Shown: positions 22,001-35,777 of the stretch, one piece after another
How positions within the stretch are numbered: the first letter of the stretch is position 1
Layout of the letters: every line of letters begins with the position of its first letter
Assembly (NCBI GenBank): GCA_000708835.1
Contig: DF237646.1
Location: forward strand, 1 to 43,688
Direction of reading: 5' to 3'
Origin: Klebsormidium nitens
Lineage: Eukaryota; Plantae; Klebsormidiophyceae
Length of the DNA stretch: 43,688 nt
The notes under the pieces: generated by a model
What the model saw: the letters and a program-made list of their open reading frames with translations, nothing else
What the model was told of the DNA's origin: nothing
The model's database searches: none
Position numbers and translations under genes: made by a program

Positions 22001-24248
22001 GCGGCTTGGACCACTTTGGACCCACCCTTCCGAAACTGTGTCCTTCAACATGGTTGGACTGCCCGCAGACTTGCAACTGGAGAATTAATTTTCACAAGGA
22101 TCAGAAATTTGTGGGTCCGGTTCTGACCCCTGTGAGCTCTCCGTACGATGCGTGTTAGAGTACGCACCTCGTTGGGCAGCACCGTTCTTGAAGCGGCAGG
22201 TGCAGTTGCGCTCATCCGGCGGAACGAGGCGGTTCCGGTTCCGGTCCTGATGCGCTCTCCGTCCTGAGCGCATCAGTTCGGAGTTCTAGATGTTAGCGAA
22301 CGAAGCAGTGCTTTCCGGTCACGCAGTTCGCTTTCTGAGAGCACGATAAATGCTGGCTGATTACTCGAACGAAGACGTGCTCGCAGAGAAACATGAATGT
22401 TCACAACACCCATAGGTTCTGCACACGCCAACCGTTCAGCGGGATCACCGGGCCCTAATTTGACAGGCATACGTTTCTCAGCGTGCCGTTGTGCAGTGGC
22501 ATTCTGCTGTACGTGGTACTGTAGACGAGGGAGGTTTGCTCCTGGTTCTCGGGTCTCGATTGGGTACAGCTAGTGACGTCCGCACTGCACGTCGAGCCTC
22601 GACCGATCATAGTCCTGCAATCAACACACAACTATCGACACAGTTAGGAAAATTCAAAAGGACTCCAGTGTTACAATTGAACAGCAAGGTGAACGCACGT
22701 CCAACTTAAGCTGTCCTGAGAAATTGAAGTGAACGGGCACGCTTTTGCGACTCGCATATGTGAGATTTCCCGCGTCGGTGGCTTCTGCAACTCATAATCC
22801 TGCGAACGAAAGGATAGGGAATACTTCGAACTGATCCACATGGAGCAGATGCGCAAAAGGTCGATAGCGCCGCTTTCTTGGAGGGGGGAGGCTCACCTGT
22901 AGACTGACGCCTGGTTTGCGTACCCCCCCGGTTGGACATTGACAGCTGTCTCCCTCAGACGCGCCGTCTCCTGGAGCGTCTTACGCGCTTTTTCATACAA
23001 AGCGGGTCGGGGGGGCCGCATCTGCACCAACCAAGCTCAGTCAAAAACTAGGAGGTTCCTTTATACCCTCGTCATGAACGTGACGCACTCGAAGTGTTGA
23101 CCTTGGAAACTAATTCAAACATTCCGACGTAATATCCACCGCCCACTTAGAGCCCCTTCTGCTCTGTTTCTTTTAAGGGAAACTTTTAAACGACGTCATG
23201 AAACACGGCGAAGAAAGATCCGGCGGGAGTTCAGACAATCAATTCGTTTGGACTGGTTCTAGCATGCCGAACGCCTCAAGAGCTTTCATGAGCACATCTA
23301 AATCGATGGGAGCTCGCAGCCATGATCGAGGTCGCCACCTGAGATAGCCAGACGGATGTTGCATAAAGGCCTTTTTCTGTTGGCTCCGTTTAGTGACCTA
23401 AGAAACGTTCTCAAAAACTCGAAGAGACCAGCTCACCGTGTCTCTGTAGTGCGATGTCCGGTGATCCCCCACCGTCGCTGTGGCCAGCCTCTCAAAAGTG
23501 GCACAGTCCGGGCTCTTCTCGAGTCGCTCCGTGCTTCCCTTCGTTGGGGGGGGCAGCGCGGCAAAGGCGGGACAGAAGCCCGTATACCCGGGGATGCCGA
23601 TGTCTGACCGGAAGGACTTGGTGCTCTTGTTACCCCCCTGACCATAACATGTAATTTCACGACTTTAGTTGAGCCACTTTTTGATCAGATTTCTAGGCTT
23701 TTTACAGAACGGCAAAGGCTGGGCAGAATCCCGTATAGCCTGGGATGCTGATGTCTGACCGGCCCGGACTTTGTGCTCTTGTTGACCCCCTGAAAAGAGT
23801 TTGTGATTCCACGAGTTAAGGTTTGGACAAGAGCTCGGCCGCTTAAGCCTCTGAACACTTTGGCACTTAGCATTGTCAACCGGAAGCCACTGTTGCCGTT
23901 GGCAGCTTATCAATGACTTCGTGGTCCTTCTGCCAGCGTCACTCAGCTGTGAGGAGTATGCAACTGGGGGCAGCCTAGCGGTCCCATACGAGAGAACGTG
24001 CCGCGCAGAATCTAGAAGTGCTATAGGATCAGTATCAGAAGCTCTTTCCTCAACAGCGTCAAATCCTGGAAATGCTTGATGAGCCCCATACAGCTCCGGT
24101 AAACAGAAAATTCAAAGGTGTTCACTCAACTTGAAGCCAACAAAAGTGGTTGATTTCTGGTCAAGAAGCTAACCTGACGCACTCCCTTGTGCATGGTGTC
24201 GATTGGTGGGTTCACTCCTTTCCCAATAAGAGGAGGCCCGATAGCCAT
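18981..24248 (-). CDS. Putative axonemal microtubule inner protein with PYG repeats (FAM166/FAP95/FAP129-like motif class), 12 exons, ~411 aa
   Basis: Hand-assembled exons 24248-24174, 23637-23437, 23021-22897, 22830-22741 (or 22756), 22614-22473, 22263-22168, 21748-21660, 21369-21321, 20965-20891, 20566-20474, 20091-19952, 19041-18981. Phases chain without an internal stop (1236 nt). Motifs: IPGYTGFCP, IPGYSGHVP, TPFYSGFRP. The first exon and the 22473-22830 exons are less certain. Confidence 0.72.
19952..20091 (-). CDS. PYG-repeat gene exon 11 (AACNVRPP...AAVAR)
   Basis: ttccag|gcc ... aa|gtaaaa. Confidence 0.72.
20474..20566 (-). CDS. PYG-repeat gene exon 10 (PRNSSTKDTLLY...TPFYSGFRPK)
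   Basis: ccgtgcag|ccg ... aag|gtgagt; high GC3. Confidence 0.8.
20891..20965 (-). CDS. PYG-repeat gene exon 9 (GTVRGTAHIPGYSGHVPKIGGESIQ)
   Basis: ttcgcgtccag|ggc ... cag|gtagct. Confidence 0.8.
21321..21369 (-). CDS. PYG-repeat gene exon 8 (LSNKHVTQSGTSFLDK)
   Basis: tgtgcag|t ... aag|gtaaag. Confidence 0.68.
21660..21748 (-). CDS. PYG-repeat gene exon 7 (VQSVGHERSGTHYMEVFG...)
   Basis: cccgcgcag|gtg; GC donor ag|gcgagt. Confidence 0.7.
22168..22263 (-). CDS. PYG-repeat gene exon 6 (DGERIRTG...VLPNE)
   Basis: gctcag|gac ... gag|gtgcgt. Confidence 0.68.
22473..22614 (-). CDS. PYG-repeat gene exon 5 (TMIGRG...STTYSRM...LRN)
   Basis: gattgcag|g ... aac|gtatgc; phase 2-0. Confidence 0.6.
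22741..22830 (-). CDS. PYG-repeat gene exon 4 (SKYSLSFRSQDYELQKPP...)
   Basis: gatcag|t; donor gc|gtgccc or at|gcgagt; phase 2-2. Confidence 0.55.
22897..23021 (-). CDS. PYG-repeat gene exon 3 (MRPPRPALYEK...ASVY)
   Basis: ggtgcag|atg ... ag|gtgagc. Confidence 0.72.
23437..23637 (-). CDS. PYG-repeat gene exon 2 (GGNKSTK...IPGYTGFCP...TSHYRDT)
   Basis: ggtcag|ggg ... acg|gtgagc; 201 nt, phase 0-0. Confidence 0.8.
23711..23815 (-). repeat. Frameshifted tandem duplicate of the acceptor and 5' half of PYG-gene exon 2
   Basis: 23711-23815 aligns with 23560-23665 (offset 151-152). It keeps ttttcag|gggg and ISIPGYTGFCPAFA but has a +1 insertion. Confidence 0.85.
24174..24248 (-). CDS. PYG-repeat gene exon 1 (MAIGPPLIGK...KGVRQ), tentative
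   Basis: aaaATGg start; donor cag|gttagc (alternative gga|gtgcgt); phase 0. Confidence 0.5.
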
Positions 24249-25658: not shown

Positions 25659-26170
25659 ATGGCGGTCGGCCGAAGCAATGGCAGCCGCTGTTATTCGACT
25701 GCATTGCTGCAAAGGGTGGCGCTCCTGATCCTCCTTACAAACTCCCTGCTGGACACTTGCAACTGGCTCTTTCACCCTGAACCTGCACTGGGATCTCAGG
25801 GTGATCTGCAAGCACGGTTTAGGCCTCTGCAGGGGTTTAGGGTTACGGGAGTCGCCGCCGCGCCAGTCTCCGCCCCCAATGTCTTCTCCTGCACTGGGAG
25901 CTGCTGTCCTCCCAAGCAGTCACCAAAGCTCTGGTCCCCGCAACTACAGAGTGGCCCTGTCAGAACACGCCTCTCGTTTCAGACAGCATTTAGTGACCCC
26001 GCATATGTCAGCAAGTACAAGCTAGCTTACCAGAAGTTGAGAGAGCTGCAAGCGAGCAATGCGAGCGATCCCCGGGGGTGGCTCCAACAGGCCAATGTGC
26101 ACTGCGCTTATTGCTCGAACACGTACGGGATGGACATACATCGCACATGGTTGTTCTTCCCTTGGCATCG
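25659..26170 (+). CDS. PPO: PPO exon 1 (hydrophobic leader, C..CCPP, CuA)
   Basis: HCAYC and FFPWHR; donor cg|gtgagt. Confidence 0.92.
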
Positions 26171-29100
26171 GTGAGTTGTCTCAGTCCTGTTTCCTCCGGA
26201 AGAAATGATTAATCTTCTTTTCTTGTCTATGCTTCCTTGCTCCAATGCCCCCTTCCACAATCGGGAGTTGCCTTTCTTGGCGTTGATCAGCTGTACAACG
26301 ATGTGCCTGCTCCCTTCTCTAGAGTCTGCCTGTACCAAGGTAGTGACCAATCGATGCAGTCTTTCTTTATGTCCTAGCTACCTGCATTTCGTCTTGCCTT
26401 TACTGAAGTTGAAGCTCCAGATCCGAATGCTGCTTTGGCGCACCTTCTTCAGGCATTCATCGTGCAAGTGCATCTTTTACCTGATTTCGATTGTTCCAAA
26501 CCGAGTTTATTTCCTGAGGCGCGCATATACCTGCGTGTGTGGACAAGTGCTGATTTGCTGTGCAAATGCTTGAGGGCTATGCCAGTCCTGGCCTTCCGAG
26601 AGGCTTGTTCAAATAGCAAGCGCATACTGCAAGTGCAGCGCACACTCTGCAAATACCACACCTGCCTTTAGGCGACAAGCAGGCTCCTTGGAAGCTTCAA
26701 GTGGAGACCCCAAGTTTGCACTGCAGTATGGATGCAAGTTATCAGACAGTCAAGAGCATTGCAACTAGTCTGGTTGCAGATTGGATTTCTGCATCACTGA
26801 CATGAGAGACCGACCGCAGCGGCGAGAAAACTCTCCATCTGATTGATTATTTACTCAGTAATCCTTGGGCAGCTCAGCGGGGAACCACAGTAATTTTACT
26901 GATTCTCTGAAAGGAACATATTCTTCGATAATGGCGAGGTGAAGCCGCTTCGAGCAGTGCAGTATGAAGAATCTTCGGACGGTCCTTTATTTCCAAAAGC
27001 GGATCCTTCGGCAGCTGAAGGATACTCCAGGTTATTCACACTGGCGTTGTGGTATTGGGACAATGTGGTGGATTGAAACGGTGTGCAAAGATCTCAGTCG
27101 GATGAATGTGTGAAGTCTCTCCAGGTGGTGCCTGTACTGAATGAGCAGATCCTGGGGCAGCTGATTGGAGACCCCACATTCACGCTGCCGCTTTAGGCGG
27201 GGATGTATGTTCGATTGGCTCAGTGTGATAATCCTCTGATCAACTGGTGTGAATATTCTCCAGGTGGTACCTGTACTTTCACGAGCGCATCCTGGGGCAG
27301 CTGATTGGAGACCCCGCATTCACACTGTCACTTCAGATAGGGATGTCATATCGATTGGATGAGTGTGAAAAAGCTCTGATTGACCAGTGTGAATATTCTC
27401 CAGGTGGTATCTGTACTTCCACGAGCGCATCCTGGAGCAGCGGTTCGGGCACCCCACACTGCCGTTTTTAGACAGGGACGTAATGTTTAAAAACCTTTTG
27501 ACCAGACAAGTTCGAATACTTTTCAGGTGGTACCTTTACTTCCACGAGCGCATCCTGGGGCAACTGATTGGGGACCCCACATTCACACTGCCGTTCTGGA
27601 ACTGGGACAGCGCTGCAGGGCGGGCCATCCCGGCGGCGTTTCTGGACAAGAGCAGTCCGATCTACAATGCAAATCGGAACAATCTCAACAGCCTCATGAG
27701 TCAGGTACGAATTGCTGTTGAGAAACTTCTGATCTTGTTTGAGTACAGGTTGACAGCAGTTGAGAGGACATCGGAGGCCTCTTCTTGAGGCAGCCGGAAT
27801 GTGCACCTATTCGTATCAAGTGGAGCAGTCAGCTTCTTGTCGCAGATTTCTCGCAACGTTTTCCTGAAATTGTGGTTGGCGTTTCATGATCCCGCTGTTT
27901 TCTCAATCAGTCCTGCGAGCTCTCAGCACTGAACTGTGCCTCGAACCAGGTCGCCTAATATCAAGGCAGGCTTTGCAGCTTTCGTGCTTCAGCTCTCCGT
28001 GGTGGATTCTCTTCTTCAGAACGATAACACTACCTCCTTTGACATGCCCTTCTGTCTGGACCTTAGGCCTATTCTTGATTCGTCCTCATTGCGCAATAGG
28101 GTCGTCTGGTGGCAATTATTCCGCCAATCAAACGGCTTGAGTTTTTGGTACGTGCAGATCACCAGCTCATGCAGCATCCCCCAGATGCAGTCCGCGATGC
28201 TAGACGCGCAGACGACATCGCTCTTCCTTGGCAAACCCCCTGGGACCGGAAGTGCAGGTTAGTTGGTAAATCTTCTGTGCCTTCTTTCTTCTTGTGGACT
28301 CCGCGGCCGCAGTCGTTAGAGACTCCGTTTCGGCTATCTATCCTTCTTCAAGACCGCAGCGGCAGGTCAGTCGGTATGTTGAAAAGTCCTGCGTGTGAAG
28401 ATCTCTCTCTTTTTCGTTGTTTCGTTGTTATTCGAAAGGACCATTGGCTTCATTGACCTTTTTCAAATGTTCGTCGTGCAAGGAAAAAAGCACACTGCAT
28501 TCGCAACCTTTATAAAAGCTGGGAACTGGCAGGGTCAGGCTTGTTGCTCGAAACCGACGTCTTTCGTGTATGGTCCTATGTTCAATCTCCCTCAAACAGT
28601 TTTGTCCTCTTTGTCCGTCTCAAAACTCCATGTTAGCGACTCTCATTCACATATACATTGGTCGCACAATATTGATGAATCAACGCCGACAACATGGTAT
28701 CGAGAATGCAGTGCTGAACATTCGGGTCCTTCTTACAGTATCAATCTGTAAGCTCTCCAAGCAGGTCCAGGCTCAACGTTCTGACCTTTCGTCTTGATCT
28801 GGTTTACCAACCGAACTGACTTGATTCCACAATCGCTCCTTGCATTCTTGATCAGGCCTGCTCGCGAGCGTCGGCAAAATGAGAACAGGATCTTTCCTCG
28901 AACTACCCTACGCCCAACTTTGAGGGAGCTCGTGAGGTCGGGAAGCCAACGTCGCTTTCTGTGTGCCACGTCCGGCGTCCTAACGAGGTCCTATCGGACG
29001 CCCTATCCAATACTCTCTCAGCACGCATCAATTACAGGTTCCCTTTTGCGGAGGGACGTGCCGCGGTTTTTCAGATCCAGCCGCTGATCAGACTTTCCGG

Positions 29101-32100
29101 ACTCACTTTTGTCAGAGGGTCCTGTCGAGTTGAGAGTATGCGGCGACCGGCCTTGACTTAATTCGTCATAGATATGGAACCCCTGGAAAAGTTAGCTTAT
29201 ATATCTTGATTTTCAGCTCTAGCGAAGCCTTTGAAATTCTTACTTTCAGGGGGTTCCGTGGAGTTGGGAGTACACGGAGCAGTCCACGTGGCAACCGGCC
29301 TGCAGTCGAGCCCTTACATCGACATGGGGTCTCTGTCCTCTGCCGGGAAAGACGCCCTCTTCTACGCGCACCACCTGAACATCGATAGGCTATGGTGGCT
29401 CTGGCCCCAGCTGCCCCCCGCCGCGAACGGCAACCCGCGCGCGAATCCGACGAGCGCCGACTGGCTTAACTCGCAGTTTGCGTTCTACGACGAGAACGCA
29501 CAGCTGACCATGTAAGTCTGTCTCAGGTTAGAGTCCAAAAAGTTTGTTTCGCAAACGCGAAGTTGTTTTTCCTTTCGTGTGGTAATCAAAAACAGCCCGC
29601 GGTTGATTATGATCTCTGCGTGAACGCGACGAGCATCGAGTAGACCAACTCGCGCACTGCGATCCTGACCGAGGACGCCCAATCCAGTTTGAAGGCTCGT
29701 CTCCTGTTGAGCACCAGGTTCCGGATGTAGACAATTGGATGCGTGTTGTGCTAGTGGTTTTCAGTACTTCGACCTATTTCCATTTCTGGGCTTTTGACAA
29801 GTGGTTGAAGATGATGGATAAAATTTGCGCTTTATTTCTCGAGGGCGGATGAGGATTGGAGGAGATCCAGTACCATGTTTTGGTACCCTCCATTTGTTGG
29901 AGAATCGATACTTTCGAAGAGCTCTGAGCTGCACTTCCTTCTCGAGTCTTCTCAGTTTAGTTCCAGACGATCAGTTGATAGAACATCGTTCCGAGCGTTC
30001 GATCCATACAGTCCAGAATTCGAGCAGATAGTTTCTCAGAACGGCGATTCCATCGATCAGGGGGAAGCCTTCCCGGCTTTTTAATTGACGGGCCAGGTCA
30101 AAAGCTGGCTGCGATTCTAGTTCCCCGCAGATTGAGCTTGTTCCAGACAGCGGTTTGTCTTTCTTGTGTTGAAAAGCTCCTTCTACGCTCTTGAGCTGAA
30201 ACGCCAACGCCTAAGCACGATAATTCTGCGCGCACGAGCACCCAAAGCACTTACACACACCGGCACTCACTTTTCGCCGGCACCAGTCTGAGCGTCCTGC
30301 GCCAAAGCCGTGCAGAGTGTCGGTGAAAGACGCGGCGAACCTGGAGCAGTCCATGGGGGTCACGTACGAAGCCGTCCCAAACGACTGGTACTACGCAGCC
30401 ACTCCGTCACCCTCACCGTCACCGTCCGCCGCACCGTCACTCTCGCCGTCACCATTACCGTCCCCCTCGGCATCACCGTTACCGTCCCCGTCTCCCTCCT
30501 CGTCACCCACACCGTCGCCCTCCAAGTCACCGGTGCCGTCGCAATCTGCCGCCCCGTCACCGTCCGGCTCGCCGGCGCCGTCCGCTTCACAGTCACCTCT
30601 TCCGTCACCTTCCCCGTCACGGCTCGTGTCTCCGTCACCGTCACTCGCACCGTCAGCCTCTACTTCTCCCGCCCCCTCGAACTCGCCGGCCGCTTCGGCA
30701 TCTCCGATACCATCTCCTTCCAAGTCATCCAACCCCTCCCCTTCTCCGATTCCCTCCCCATCTCTCGTTCCCTCCCCCTCACCAGCAGCCTCGAGCTCCG
30801 CAAACCCCAGCCCTAGCGCCTCTGCTTCGCCTTCACCAACTCCGTCATCGTCCGCAACTCCCTCCCCTTCACATTCTGCCAATCCTTCACTTTCCAAATC
30901 ACCTTCAATCTTCGCTTCCCTCGAGCCGTCCTCCTCTCCTCTTCCCTCTGCCCCGAATTCGCCCCTGCCCTCCACATCTAGTTCTCCAGCGCCCTCGGCC
31001 TCCCCATCCCCTTCAAACTCCGCTACTCCGTCCATCTCACCAGCTGTCTCCGCTTCACCCGAACCGTCCTTCTCTCCTCTTCCCTCACCCCTTCCATCCG
31101 CATCTAGTTCTCCAACGACCTCGGTCTCTCCATCTCCTTCGTCGTCTTCTGAACCATCTCCCTCAAGCTCTCCCGCTTCTTCGAACTCCCCCTCACCAAT
31201 TGCCTCAGCTTCGCCTGCGGCTTCCAACTCCCCTCTTCCATCTCCTTCAAATTCACCTTTCCCTTCCACATTCACGTCTCCGGCGCCCTCGATCTCCCCT
31301 ACTCCGTCGTCGTCTTCAGCCCCGTCTCCCTCCAACTCTGTGCCTCCCTCAAACTCCCCCTCGCCAATTGCCTCTCCTTCGCCTGCGGCTTCCAACTCCC
31401 CCCTTCCATCGCCCTCGACTTCACCTTTTCCTTCCACATCTAGTTCTCCCGCGCCCTCGGTTTCCCCAGCTCCTTCGAACTCTCTGCCTCCGTCAAACTC
31501 CCCCTCACCAATCGCCTCTGCTTCGCCTGCAACTTCCAACTCCCCTCTTCCCTCCACATCTAGTTCTCCCGCCCCCTCGCTTTCCCTAGCTCCTTCGTCT
31601 TCACCCGTTCCCTCGCCTTCTAACTCGCCCAATCCTTCCACTTCTCCTTCCCCAGTTCCCTCAACCTCTCCGTCACAGTTGCCGGTTCCATCTCCCTCAG
31701 GCTCACCTCTTCCAAGCCCCTCGGTATCTACTTCCCCGGCAATCTCCCTTTCTCCATACCCTTCAATCTCCGCCACCCCGTCCCCCTTCAACTCTCCCTT
31801 CCCATCTAATTCGCCCTCGCCAGTTGCTTCGTCCTCACCCGCGCAGTCAAGCTCTCCCCTTCCGTCACACTCTGCGTCACCAAAATTCAGCCCCCCGGTC
31901 TCCCCGTCTCCAAACCCCTCCCCCTCGCTCCCTCCTTCTTCTTCTTCGACACCATCCCCTTCAAGTTCTCCTGTTCCATCCCCGTCTAACATTCCCTCTC
32001 CATCAGCTGCGCCTTTCATTTCCCCTTCCCCTAGCGCTTCATCAGCACCTCCCCCTTCCGTATCTCCGCACCCCTCGGTTTCGGCTAACTCCTCCCCTAA

Positions 32101-35100
32101 CCCTAGCCGCTCCCCTAACCCCAGCGCTTCTCCCAGTCCACGCCCCTCAAACTCGCAAACTCCGGCGCCCAGTGCTAGCGCAGTTGCCTCTCGAAGCCCC
32201 GCCCCCTCCATAAGTCCCCGAGCTTCGGTTAGCCCTAAACCCTCGGTTAGCGCCAAACCCTCGGTTAGCGCCAGACCCTCCTCAAGCCCGCGGCAGTATC
32301 CAACCCCTAAACCCTCCCCCTCGTCCACCCCAAAACCTTCCCCCTTGCCGGCAAACGCTTACCGAGACTGGCTGGTCTCGCTTTTGAGCGCCCATTACTC
32401 GCAGCAGTACGGTGTTCCTTATAAACCAGCGGAACAGGGTTACGGAAGTTACGGAAACACAGGGTACGGGAATTCTGGTTACGGGGCGGCTTACACAAAT
32501 CCGTACCAAGGTTTCGGCAACCAAGGGCAAAACCAGGCATACTATCCTTTTGGGAGTTACCCAGCGGTTAGCACGGCTGGGGCGTCAAATCAGGGTTATT
32601 GGCAGAGTGCTTATGATGGGTCCCAGCAGTTAGGAGAGGCAAACGACGAGGGCAATGAAAGAGGAAACGGTGACTTTTGGGGGCGACGTGGCAGGCGACT
32701 GCTCGCCCAGGTGAGCTACGAATTCGTGGACACCTGTCCGAAACATCAATATCAAAATCTTTATCGTCAAGTCCTTATTTCCTCCTTAATGAAGGCTCAA
32801 AGTAGCTGGTTGGGAAGTGGTTTGTACCGCTCAGCATTTTCTTGTATGAAAGTCTCCTTGTAGTGGTTTGCATGTACCAGTTCAGGCCGAGTTCGGCTTG
32901 TGGACATGCTTACTGTTTTCGAGAGTGTCCATCCAAAGCGGGTGTGGGCCCTTCAGTCTTTTCTGATCCCGATCTCTTTCTTCCTCCAAAGGCTGTTTGG
33001 CTTGGCGTATAACCCTTTCAAAGAGTCTGTTTGGCATCTTTTTGCATAATGCACGCGTATTGGTTGACGGGATCAACTCCTGAAGCTCCTGCAGTGAGCC
33101 CCCGGGAACCTAGCATAGAGGTTATCAGATTGCCAGATGAAACCTCCGTTCCTCCTCCGTTCCGTTCCTCCGTTCATCTCTAATCAGAGCCACTCCGCGC
33201 ATTTGCCCCGTCCTCTAAAGGCTCCTTTCCCACACAGGGAAACTCCAACCGGGACGACTCTCCAGGGCAGCCCACCAGCCGTCGCCGGCGCAACCGGGAA
33301 GACAACTACGACCCCATCCAAGTTCTCGCAAACACCCCCCCGGCACCGGTCACCCCTCTCCCGGGGCAATCCCCTGGGCGTAATTACGTCCCTTTCACCA
33401 CTGGTCCGTGTGTCACGAACATCAACCGGCCGCGACGGCCTCCCAAAAAGGAGGGGAGGAAACCTGCGGCGTCCCCCAAACCGGGCGCGGTCAACCCGGT
33501 GGTTAACGACACGTCCGGGGTGGTGGAGGTGCTGGTTATCCAGGGGTTATGCGTCCCGGTCAACACGAACGTGACGTTCCAGGTGTATCTGGAACTTCCG
33601 CAAGTAAGAGAAAACGTCTGAGGCGAATCATCGCAAGGTCCCAGCAACCTTGGAGCTCTTTTCAGAATCACATGGTCTGGCCACGTGGGAGAAGTGCAAA
33701 TGAATCAAACCAGACAAGTGATGAGCACGTTCCGTTTCGCACGCCTTTCAAGGTTTTTGATGGCTGAAGCGAGCAGCGTAGATGACAGTCGTTGCTGGAA
33801 ACAGCGTGCAGAACTGTGAAAGAGTTGGAGGAGAGTACACATGAAGATCAGTGTATGACTTGCTTCGCCTATTCTAAAGTGCCACGTTCTGAATTGTCAA
33901 ACATTCTAAGACCGCATCTTCACCGGCAATCCGCAGTTCAACGATCTTTTTCATTCAATCCGCTGATATTCAATCAATGTCCTGCTTTTACTCTGCTCTT
34001 CGTCGTGAATCTGATCCCCCGAGCGATATTTATCAATGCCAAAGCTCTTTCTTAATCGCGAAGCTAACCCCAACACTTTCCACGCAGGCCACTGCCCGCG
34101 TTTACCCTGACGACAGCCGCGTTTCCCGCTGGTACGTCGGCCAGTACGTCCACGTTCCGATGATGCCTATGGGCGGCACCGGAACGGACGGAATCGACGG
34201 AAGCGGAATGTTGGACGGTGGGATGGGCGGCATGCGGCGAAGACGGCTGCTTGGGGTGCAGGTAAGGAGGCGGTTAAAATATCAAATTGTTTTTAAGAAA
34301 AAGCTGAGTATTTTGAGAACCATTCGAGTTGTCCCCTCTTCGTGATTGCTTGTATGTCATCAGGCTATTGATCGCAAGTCTTCTCTAACGGTTATAGTTG
34401 TTGAGTGGCCTTGATTTGTGCTGTCTCCAAAATCTCGAAAGTAGCAATAGGCTTCCGTCTTGATCCATGTTACACCTCTTCCGTAGTATATTCTGTGTCG
34501 TAAAATGGCCCGCAATTGTGATGGATTATTGCCACCGGTTCGACGTGCGAACGGTGCGCTGATTTTACTGAAGGCTCTTAGAGATGCAGAAAGCTGGGGC
34601 CCATTCTACTGAGTAAGACGTCGTCGAATTGATGAAAGAGACCGCGACCTAAACAAGAAACCTGTTTGGATGATGGCTTAATTGCTTGTCGCTCGCTGCG
34701 TTGTAAATGGAAATCTCGTGAGTCCAGACACCCAGAAAGTACCCTGCATCGATGATGGGCGTTTGACGTGAGCCTATTTTCTCTTTTCTTCTGCAGGCTG
34801 CGTATTCCCAGGCAGGGGGTTCACAGCAACCATACCAGACCACCCTCAGTCAAGCCGGGGTTTCTTGGTCAGGATATCTGGAGCAAGCAGCCGGTTTGCC
34901 CCAGGGTTATGCAGCTGGTTATGCTCAAGCGAACTACGGTTCTCAGGCCGGCGGTTATCTGGCGCAGGTTGGTGGTTATCGACCGCAGACAGTGGGTTAC
35001 CAGCCGCAAACCGTCGGTTACCAGCAGACTGCGAATCCTGCCTATCCGCAGACCTATGGTCAGTCCGTCCCCGGTTATCAGACTGGTTACGGAAACTTGC

Positions 35101-35777
35101 CCAGCGGTTACCAAGCGGGTTATCAGCCGGGTTACGGGCAGGGTTACCAGTCTGCTTATGGGCAGGTTAACCAGCAGATCTACCAGCCGGGTTATCAGCC
35201 GGGTTTCCAGCTGGGTAATCAGGCACTCGGTCAATTAAGTTATCAGTCCGGTTACCAAGCGGGTTACCAGCCTGGCTTTGAAACCGTTGTTCAGCCCGGC
35301 GTCCAGTCAGGCAACCGGTTAAGCTATCAGCCGGGTTATCAAGGCAGCGGTGCCAATTCGGGTAAACAGGGTTTCGGCCAAGCCTACTCGTCAAACTCTG
35401 CCCCGTCTAATTTCGCCCCTAAAGGCGGAAGCGCCCCCTTCGACGAAGTTCCTTCGTATCAGTCATACGTGGGGAGTCAGAAAGACGGGAGCAGTGTTGG
35501 GAACACCTACGACCGCCCGGGGTCGGCCGCTCATGAGCAGCAAACGTCGACGCCGTCAACACCGGCGGGGGTAATGAGCAGCATGGACTCGGCCGCGTGT
35601 ATGCTTGAGAACGTTAGATTCTGTATCAACAGGAACGTGATGAATCTGGGTATAGTGGATGCGAGTACGTTGACCGTCGTGCTGGTGCCAGTGGCAGTTG
35701 ACGAGAATGGGGAGCAAGTGCAGCCCTCAAGTCCACCTCCTGTGACGTTTGAAAACATTCTGATTGAATTCGAGTAG
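25659..35777 (+). CDS. PPO: Plant-type polyphenol oxidase/tyrosinase fused to a Ser-Pro stalk and Tyr/Gly/Gln-rich modules, 8 exons, ~1700 aa, probably secreted
   Basis: Exons 25659-26170, 27527-27704, 28020 (or 28158)-28257, 29250-29511, 30316-32710, 33238-33603, 34088-34261, 34797-35777; phases consistent, 5106 nt. CuA: [22 protein letters not shown], followed by [11 protein letters not shown]. CuB: [12 protein letters not shown]...DMG...[21 protein letters not shown]-like: [27 protein letters not shown]-like: [15 protein letters not shown] / YVGQYVHVP / [18 protein letters not shown]. Confidence 0.92.
27085..27480 (+). repeat. Three degenerate tandem copies of the PPO exon-2 acceptor and 5' half
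   Basis: ctccag|gtggt(a/g)..tgtact..gagc..atcctgg..cag..ggagacccc starts at 27125, 27264 and 27404; the functional copy starts at 27527. Confidence 0.92.
27527..27704 (+). CDS. PPO: PPO exon 2 ([11 protein letters not shown]...LPFWNWD...)
   Basis: ctttcag|g ... cag|gtacga. Confidence 0.92.
28020..28257 (+). CDS. PPO: PPO exon 3 (5' end at 28020 or 28158)
   Basis: Two in-frame acceptors (cttcttcag|aac and cgtgcag|atc); [19 protein letters not shown]; donor g|gttagt. Confidence 0.75.
29250..29511 (+). CDS. PPO: PPO exon 4 (CuB site)
   Basis: actttcag|gg ... at|gtaagt; HGAVH and [11 protein letters not shown]. Confidence 0.93.
30316..32710 (+). CDS. PPO: PPO exon 5 (end of DWL domain, Ser-Pro stalk, Tyr-rich module 1, RRLL)
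   Basis: gtgcag|a ... cag|gtgagc; 2395-nt open exon. Confidence 0.88.
30400..32345 (+). repeat. ~650-aa Ser-Pro (SPSP/SPAP) low-complexity coding repeat with internal duplications
   Basis: Translation dominated by SP/PS/AP dipeptides. Unit SPIAS(A/P)[11 protein letters not shown] recurs at ~31190, ~31365 and ~31500. Confidence 0.95.
33238..33603 (+). CDS. PPO: PPO exon 6 (start of KFDV-type domain)
   Basis: cccacacag|gga ... caa|gtaaga; [28 protein letters not shown]. Confidence 0.85.
34088..34261 (+). CDS. PPO: PPO exon 7 (YVGQYVHVP...RRRRLLGVQ)
   Basis: ccacgcag|gcc ... cag|gtaagg. Confidence 0.85.
34797..35777 (+). CDS. PPO: PPO exon 8 (GYQ-rich module 2 and end of KFDV-type domain)
   Basis: ttcttctgcag|gct, in frame with ORF 34896-35777; ends LTVVLVP...[11 protein letters not shown]-stop. 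Confidence 0.88.
   Translation, partial: AAYSQAGGSQQPYQTTLSQAGVSWSGYLEQAAGLPQGYAAGYAQANYGSQAGGYLAQVGGYRPQTVGYQPQTVGYQQTANPAYPQTYGQSVPGYQTGYGNLPSGYQAGYQPGYGQGYQSAYGQVNQQIYQPGYQPGFQLGNQALGQLSYQSGYQAGYQPGFETVVQPGVQSGNRLSYQPGYQGSGANSGKQGFGQAYSSNSAPSNFAPKGGSAPFDEVPSYQSYVGSQKDGSSVGNTYDRPGSAAHEQQTSTPSTPAGVMSSMDSAACMLENVRFCINRNVMNLGIVDASTLTVVLVPVAVDENGEQVQPSSPPPVTFENILIEFE

Follow-up and report, generated by a model that had tools for sequence, protein, structure and literature searches.

The 43,688-nt window analyzed here, contig DF237646.1 of the Klebsormidium nitens assembly GCA_000708835.1, carries at positions 25659–35777 of its plus strand one gene of eight exons for an unusually large polyphenol oxidase (PPO). 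The coding sequence of 4968 nt has a single terminal stop and gives a conceptual product of 1655 aa. In this product, a catalytic head with a complete type-3 copper centre is followed by a Ser-Pro repeat region, a Tyr/Gly/Gln module (YGQ1) and a predicted KFDV-type shielding domain into which a second Tyr-rich module (GYQ2) is inserted. We are highly confident that this giant open reading frame (ORF) is one real gene under selection. The wider reading, according to which the gene makes a giant PPO that is secreted, processed and bound to the wall, and that comes from a minor spliced isoform, we hold to be evenly balanced.

An initial annotation of this DNA had proposed a protein of about 1700 aa composed of a copper site, Ser-Pro repeats, a YGQ module, RRLL motifs and a split KFDV domain with a GYQ insert. 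The eight-exon model gives 1655 aa, every element of that description lies where it had been placed, and the order of the modules is correct in every item.

Gene structure, orthologs and selection

The exon model was built by tblastn with the nearest relatives and a search for frame-keeping GT..AG pairs. Stop-to-stop translation and Pfam placed pieces of PF00264 in three separate plus-strand ORFs (25659–26171, 27483–27785, and 29231–29512). Exon 1 (25659–26170) holds the start codon, a signal-like hydrophobic segment (aa 20–34) and the CuA histidines H148, H161, and H170 together with Cys149, and was recognized by PF00264 and by tblastn to PPOs of Chara. Exon 2 (27527–27704) encodes the rest of the CuA region (PF00264, 32.9 bits). 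Exon 3 (28158–28257) lies between CuA and CuB and was found by tblastn to the Chara protein P0005; the share of sequence words of 28100–29245 present in RNA fits exon 3 alone. Exon 4 (29250–29511) encodes the CuB histidines H272, H276, and H305 (PF00264, 52.1 bits) and the first half of the DWL domain. All six copper histidines are identical in the orthologs described below, as is Cys149, which stands beside the first CuA histidine in an HCAYC motif. The complete type-3 copper site of the initial annotation, with three histidines each at CuA and CuB and the adjacent cysteine, could thus be located residue by residue, with PF00264 matches in three exons. According to an exhaustive phmmer search, exon 4 is 52–59% identical to its nearest relatives, the Chara PPOs. 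It also matches plant PPOs in the PDB with E values of ~1e-17 to 1e-18 (grape 2P3X, walnut 5CE9, latent apple 6ELS, aurone synthase 4Z11, and sweet potato 1BT1).

Intron 4 (29512–30315; 804 nt, GT..AG, phase 2) divides the DWL domain in two. Positions 3–21 of the 52 in the PF12142 model are matched in exon 4 (28.3 bits, cut-off 20.8) and positions 25–48 at the start of exon 5, within its first 26 codons (15.4 bits), and both parts are contiguous once the intron is removed. Therefore, the exon encoding the Ser-Pro repeats belongs to the oxidase gene. This exon 5 (30316–32710) runs from the second DWL half through the Ser-Pro region (30398–32350, aa 379–1029, delimited by composition) and YGQ1 (32351–32710, aa 1030–1149) to a first RRLL motif (32693–32704). 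Exon 6 (33238–33603), which is spliced in RNA and gives a hidden Markov model (HMM) match, encodes a basic Pro-rich spacer and then, from about 33493, the first KFDV-type strands. Exon 7 (34088–34261) encodes the end of the putative N-terminal KFDV half, a Gly/Met-rich stretch and the second RRLL (34241–34252). The first part of exon 8 (34797–35582) encodes GYQ2, and its last part (35583–35777) the putative C-terminal KFDV half (aa 1592–1655) and the stop codon. In the window, exons 5–8 form an uninterrupted ORF of 1305 codons, of which about 650 are non-repetitive.

A search with exon 8 returned three proteins (P0152–P0154) that have a GYQ module and a nearly identical C-terminal KFDV half. 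They are encoded on genomic DNA, in two pairs of contigs from JGI metagenomes and three contigs from Logan. Two of the loci, L009 and L011, each hold a complete gene with eight exons in the same order and ORFs intact at 1598 and 1617 aa. All seven of their introns lie at homologous positions with GT..AG ends, and the RRLL sites are the same. Because their upstream neighbor on the opposite strand is the one found at 22479–24239 of the window, we consider these loci orthologous. This neighbor is a multi-exon gene on the minus strand, one exon of which reaches 92–96% protein identity to L009 and L011. On the other side of the gene, exons of a squalene epoxidase (PF08491) lie about 4–10 kb downstream of exon 8, on the minus strand, in both orthologous loci (L004–L007), whereas in the window tblastx found no counterpart in the 8 kb that follow the gene. 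Either the downstream synteny is broken or the squalene epoxidase lies farther off.

Selection was estimated by the method of Nei and Gojobori as the ratio of nonsynonymous (Ka) to synonymous (Ks) divergence. Between L009 and L011, where Ks is about 0.2, Ka/Ks is 0.07 in the tyrosinase part, 0 in the second DWL half, 0 in the N-terminal KFDV half of exon 6 (Ks 0.32) and 0.02 in the C-terminal half; it rises to 0.23 in the Ser-Pro region and 0.37 in GYQ2. Between the window and L009, Ks is mostly ~1.1–1.8, with Ka/Ks of 0.06–0.31 (Ks of YGQ1 is not estimable). Overall, the repeat regions show the highest Ka/Ks (0.23–0.66), and module lengths vary among the orthologs. Conservation begins exactly at the acceptor of exon 5, while the adjoining intron sequence is unalignable. 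Furthermore, the twelve codons of exon 5 ahead of its only in-frame Met show conservation, with changes that are synonymous. Because of these selection signals and of the codons before the Met, we conclude that exons 5–8 are translated in nature as a continuation of exon 4. The earlier proposal of a single gene is borne out by the DWL domain split across intron 4, by the frame kept through eight exons and by two intact orthologous ORFs under purifying selection.

Intron 1 contains exon-2-like sequence. In the window, the 5′ part of exon 2 recurs as three to four incomplete copies in 26976–27592 (intron 1 and the start of exon 2), within which TRF and tblastn delimit a 140-bp tandem array of 3.5 copies (27118–27592, plus strand) made of such pseudo-exons. 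An exon-2-like copy also occurs in intron 1 of an ortholog (L005, 816–985), and these copies are the only parts of intron 1 that can be aligned between the window and L009. They may be decayed duplicates, or alternative or poison exons.

The enlarged modules and the putative shielding domain

Compared with other PPOs, the distance between the catalytic head and the C-terminal domain is exceptional. From the DRLW motif of CuB to the KFDV core we counted 931 aa. Among 93 PPO representatives whose C-terminal domain could be recognized, the median is 111 aa and the largest value 408 (Chara GBG77680). Most of this distance is taken up by the Ser-Pro region, whose 651 aa comprise 38% Ser, 29% Pro, 10% Ala, and 4% Thr (81% for the four together). 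It contains 109 SP dipeptides and just 6 PP, a composition that corresponds to the non-contiguous Ser-Pro pattern by which hydroxyproline-rich glycoproteins (HRGPs) are recognized; every Ser and Pro codon is in use. Two 168-nt tandem copies within the region differ at first, second, and third codon positions in a 6/6/20 distribution (20 of 32 at third positions; P = 0.0007).

Each of the two insertions, Ser-Pro plus YGQ1 and GYQ2, ends or begins at a conserved RRLL. YGQ1 ends in RGRRLLAQ, after which the basic Pro-rich spacer follows; the second site, at aa 1323, reads RRRRLLGVQ and precedes GYQ2 (aa 1330–1591), which has 262 aa with 30 Tyr. The Tyr content of the GYQ modules is 11–13%. The window, L009, and L011 share both conserved sites (RRLLAQ and RRLLG[VL]Q), with the tetrad at the domain boundary. 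In type I pectin methylesterases, RRLL or RKLL is the motif at which subtilases process the protein (PMC13477033).

The C-terminus is best described from its sequence as a predicted KFDV-type shielding domain split by an insert. A first custom HMM, made from the C-terminal 165 aa of the PPO representatives of the exhaustive search, matched aa 1235–1295 (profile 48–104; strands EVLVIQG, FQVY, and YVGQYVHVP) and aa 1600–1654 (profile 117–160; VRFCI, LGIVD, VVLVP, and ILIEFE). With a second HMM, built from 25 PPO C-terminal domains from which Chara was excluded, we obtained collinear matches at aa 1229–1296 and 1601–1654, and the same pair was found in both orthologs. When the insert was removed and the halves were joined, the score was 40.2 bits, compared with a best score of 3.9 bits in 2000 shuffles. 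Between the halves lie the Gly/Met-rich stretch, the second RRLL site and GYQ2, about 300 aa in total, so that GYQ2 would sit in a loop of the domain. Pfam gave no match to exons 6 and 7 alone, and a PDB sequence search with the two halves alone returned nothing meaningful. Of the three families that had been suggested for an InterPro-style check, PF00264 and PF12142 are recognized by Pfam, while KFDV (PF12143) is sub-threshold in Pfam and was recovered by the custom HMM.

A published survey describes K. nitens PPOs as tyrosinase or tyrosinase plus DWL and places the first appearance of KFDV in Chara (PMC10541563); the supplementary files of that paper contain no K. nitens accessions. We also noted P0006, a protein of 449 aa from JGI/Logan that is possibly bacterial and is 57% identical to exon 4. 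Its DWL domain is followed by about 130 aa that resemble, by eye, a short shielding domain. If this tail is a shielding domain, it is relevant to the claim that KFDV originated only after a transfer into streptophytes.

By inspection, the N-terminus resembles a secretory signal and not a bipartite plastid transit peptide. The most hydrophobic 15-mer lies within aa 18–34 in all three proteins (window, L009, and L011), and inspection found neither a Ser/Thr-rich stromal domain before this hydrophobic core nor a twin-arginine motif directly before it.

The initial annotation knew of no PPO with this architecture, and our searches found none comparable in proteins or in the literature. A search among PPOs of 907–2887 aa with the tyrosinase region of the Chara protein P0007 returned only P0007 itself and a 1190-aa protein of Papaver. 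A word-index protein search with the YGQ1 region among candidates of 483–1538 aa gave nothing. Exhaustive phmmer with the exon 4 piece gave no self match, and its long matches were mollusc hemocyanins or a transposon chimera. In the literature searched, we came across neither a PPO joined to a hydroxyproline-rich module nor a description of an HRGP chimera with a type-3 copper oxidase as its enzyme. Long S/P- and Y/P/Q-rich linkers, smaller than those here, do occur in the Chara PPOs P0007 and P0008. Judging from these sequences, the architecture appears to be an extreme and conserved form of a PPO-family trend toward long linkers. The gene model of P0007 (Chara braunii GBG77680, 1650 aa) itself looks chimeric, with about 960 aa of non-PPO sequence, possibly of mobile-element origin, joined to an N-truncated PPO; in the PPO part, an S-rich linker of about 370 aa leads to a KFDV-type end.

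Four known systems resemble parts of this protein. Plant-type PPOs, of which the nearest sequences are C. braunii GBG84233, GBG87042, GBG77680, and GBG81568, share the copper site, the HCAYC thioether motif, DWL, the order catalytic domain–linker–shielding domain and the IEFE end. They differ in their short linker, unsplit KFDV domain, usual plastid transit peptide and Phe gate, where the protein described here has an N-terminus that by inspection looks signal-like and Leu, not Phe, as gate residue; shielded PPOs are also much smaller than its 1655 aa, at 40–70 kDa (PMC8517187). Chimeric HRGPs of green algae and plants (Volvox pherophorins, matrix proteases, chimeric arabinogalactan-proteins, and extensins), in which a Ser-Pro or Pro-rich rod is attached to a globular or enzymatic domain, are similar to this secretory-looking protein in its long alternating Ser-Pro rod, which would be hydroxylated and glycosylated, and in its folded domain. 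Type I pectin methylesterase pro-proteins are similar in having a basic RRLL at module boundaries of a wall-directed pro-enzyme. They belong, however, to an unrelated family; here the second RRLL would lie inside a loop of a folded domain, and cleavage is predicted from the motif. In quinone tanning, as in mussel byssus and trematode eggshell, tyrosinase acts on Tyr/Gly-rich structural proteins. That system also combines a tyrosinase-family enzyme with disordered Tyr/Gly-rich sequence, although enzyme and substrate are separate proteins there and would be one polypeptide here, where the first CuB histidine is moreover followed by Gly.

Transcripts and intron 4

Twenty RNA runs under two organism labels matched the stretch, and contigs of four runs from four studies were aligned to 29300–35299. 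These contigs of about 5.0–6.2 kb skip 32708–33234, 33604–34087, and 34257–34791, which correspond, allowing for the offsets of the cut points, to introns 5–7 with GT..AG ends. They reach 961–1074 nt upstream of 29300; spliced exons 1–4 account for 840 nt, leaving a 5′ untranslated region of about 120–230 nt. In 13 runs, including three of the four that were aligned, 0.07 of the words of 28100–29245 are present where 0.063 is expected from exon 3 alone, which indicates that intron 3 is absent. We also considered that the ~1 kb of contig upstream of 29300 could be unspliced genomic DNA reaching back to ~28230, but the exon-3-only word share excludes this. A general intron signal was found in the 2024 study only.

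Several results speak against the proposed full-length, secreted and processed protein. The same contigs are contiguous with the genome over 29300–32707 with zero differences, so intron 4 is kept in all four runs. For the whole interval 29300–35299, the word share is 0.72 in eleven runs, compared with an expectation of 0.726 if intron 4 is kept and 0.586 if it is spliced. With the intron retained, the reading frame continues from ENAQLTM into TAA (ATG TAA, stop at 29513–29515), directly after the catalytic exons. No spliced junction of exons 4 and 5 was seen in the RNA contigs of the four runs, although contigs drop rare variants. As for the protein, PF12143 reaches 13.4–13.6 bits on the last exon against a cut-off of 26 (model 75–117 of 130, pieces scanned separately). 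Finally, the first CuB histidine is followed by Gly, which is the state of the catechol-oxidase type, and not by Asn; under the published activity-controller idea, Gly at this position argues against strong monophenolase activity on tyrosine. The position has been described as G or N (PMC10541563).

Since the words of intron 3 are absent and introns 5–7 are spliced, retention is specific to intron 4 and reflects neither genomic DNA nor bulk pre-mRNA. The gene thus shows a detained-intron pattern, in which one intron is kept while its neighbors are removed. Contigs show the presence, not the absence, of a variant. A junction path above roughly a quarter of the flanking depth would nevertheless have broken the contig, and we therefore infer that the form with intron 4 spliced is a minority or absent in the sampled RNA. 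The giant protein would accordingly need a minor or conditional isoform. One run, X18 of study P2, has a word share of 0.57 over 29300–35299, close to the value expected for the spliced form, while its sister runs have 0.72–0.76; it may represent a condition where the productive isoform dominates. The initial annotation had raised the case of transcripts that end early, with the downstream exons belonging to another gene. Our results support one gene, but the dominant mRNA of cultured cells does stop coding after the catalytic exons.

In the orthologs, intron 4 interrupts the same codon in the same phase (GTC AT|GTGAGT ... GTGCAG|A GTC TCG), and its retention also gives an immediate stop. A comparison of the window with L009, whose intron 4 sequences are unalignable, revealed no conserved element within the intron that might explain retention. 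Between L009 and L011, intron 4 is the least conserved of the introns.

Elsewhere in the window, positions 1–2000 are strongly AT-rich (GC 0.26–0.32, against ~0.50 for the remaining window). An Rfam scan of the whole window gave no match, nor did a Pfam scan of ten neighboring ORFs.

Proposed role and alternative explanations

The gene keeps the usual PPO build of catalytic domain, DWL, disordered linker and C-terminal KFDV-type domain, but two disordered parts have grown: the linker, by a Ser-Pro rod of about 650 aa and YGQ1, and a loop of the shielding domain, by GYQ2 (about 260 aa). We propose the following role for its product. The N-terminal hydrophobic segment would lead the protein into the secretory pathway, where the rod would be hydroxylated and glycosylated like other hydroxyproline-rich glycoproteins of algae and plants; Klebsormidium walls contain Hyp-Araf4 (PMC5371791). 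A subtilase could then cut the RRLL sites, so that the shielding domain is released or loosened and the enzyme activated. The result would be an active oxidase on a wall-embedded rod, whose substrates may be small phenolics or exposed tyrosines, including its own. Retained intron 4 would act as a brake on production, and the full-length protein would come from a spliced isoform that is minor or depends on conditions. The mRNA that keeps the intron would either be non-productive or give a 351-aa enzyme with the catalytic part only. For such a secreted, processed and wall-bound oxidase, predicted from the sequence, we see arguments of about equal weight on both sides. A more specific version, in which the wall-tethered oxidase carries its own cross-linking substrate, appears rather improbable. 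It would have the GYQ loop and the YGQ tail oxidized to 3,4-dihydroxyphenylalanine (DOPA) and quinones after RRLL cleavage, in cis or between neighboring molecules, which would harden or glue the wall or mucilage. Removal of intron 4 would then be regulated, for instance on drying, attachment or wounding.

Two alternatives accept the gene but assign it a simpler product. The Ser-Pro and GYQ modules of a giant protein that is indeed made could be neutral low-complexity growth that serves neither as substrate nor as adhesive, the enzyme oxidizing small phenolics as other PPOs do. PPO linkers are disordered and variable (PMC8517187), and Chara PPOs have independently acquired long S-rich or YPQ/P-rich linkers. 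The variable module lengths, the raised Ka/Ks of the repeat regions and the Gly after the first CuB histidine also agree with such tolerated expansion. On the other hand, the modules keep their kind, order and approximate size across a Ks of ~1.5 with Ka/Ks well below 1, the differences between the internal repeats are concentrated at third positions, and the flanking RRLL motifs are conserved. We regard neutral growth as possible, though doubtful. It is also conceivable that the intron-4-retaining mRNA is the real output, namely a secreted, unshielded and constitutively active tyrosinase of 351 aa, and that exons 5–8 are a long spliced 3′ stretch which this strain translates rarely or never. 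This would fit the contiguous intron 4 in the dominant contigs of four studies, the stop right after ENAQLTM, the word shares, which point to retention in most RNA runs, and the report of PPOs with tyrosinase only or tyrosinase plus DWL in K. nitens and Chara (PMC10541563). However, exons 5–8 are under purifying selection as strong as that on the catalytic domain in the orthologs, and their long ORF is intact in the window. With three spliced introns beyond its stop, the retained form would in addition be a classic target of nonsense-mediated decay, and the truncation removes half of the DWL hairpin. We consider a short enzyme as the real output unlikely.

Two further explanations separate the modules from the enzyme or the enzyme from the wall. 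A short PPO transcript could end in intron 4 and a second transcript start there, giving a Ser-Pro/GYQ/KFDV protein from the Met at 30353, which is conserved in the orthologs within EQSMGVTYE; the assembler would have merged both into one contig. A contig that spans two genes does not prove a single transcript. Contig depth is uniform by construction and supports neither side of this question. Yet the second product would lack a signal peptide, the DWL domain would be divided between two proteins, and the twelve codons before the Met are conserved as protein, with synonymous changes, while the intron just upstream is unalignable; we find two overlapping transcripts very improbable. An ordinary PPO of the plastid lumen as in land plants, with the extra modules as annotation noise, would be in line with the plastid transit peptides of ~75% of plant PPOs (PMC8517187). 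The hydrophobic segment of the present protein, however, lies at the extreme N-terminus and by inspection lacks a stromal domain or twin-arginine lead, and the modules lie in exons, are joined in frame by splicing and are conserved, which makes this explanation extremely improbable.

Returning to the giant PPO, its KFDV-type domain is missed by standard scans because the ~300-aa insert splits it, and surveys of this kind undercount such domains. A PPO of the Klebsormidium lineage with a KFDV-type domain would move the origin of the domain deeper in the tree. RNA-guided annotation will probably cut the gene in two, and the constant retention of one truncating intron makes it a clean case for intron-based control in a streptophyte alga. 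Streptophyte algal PPOs have so far been catalogued only by domain counts. A conserved phenol oxidase fused to a Ser-Pro rod and Tyr-rich modules is a candidate enzyme through which an early land-adapted alga may carry out oxidative chemistry of its wall or adhesives. If the self-cross-linking version were true, the plant lineage would have its own counterpart to the quinone tanning of animals, and a way to cross-link wall proteins independently of peroxidases.

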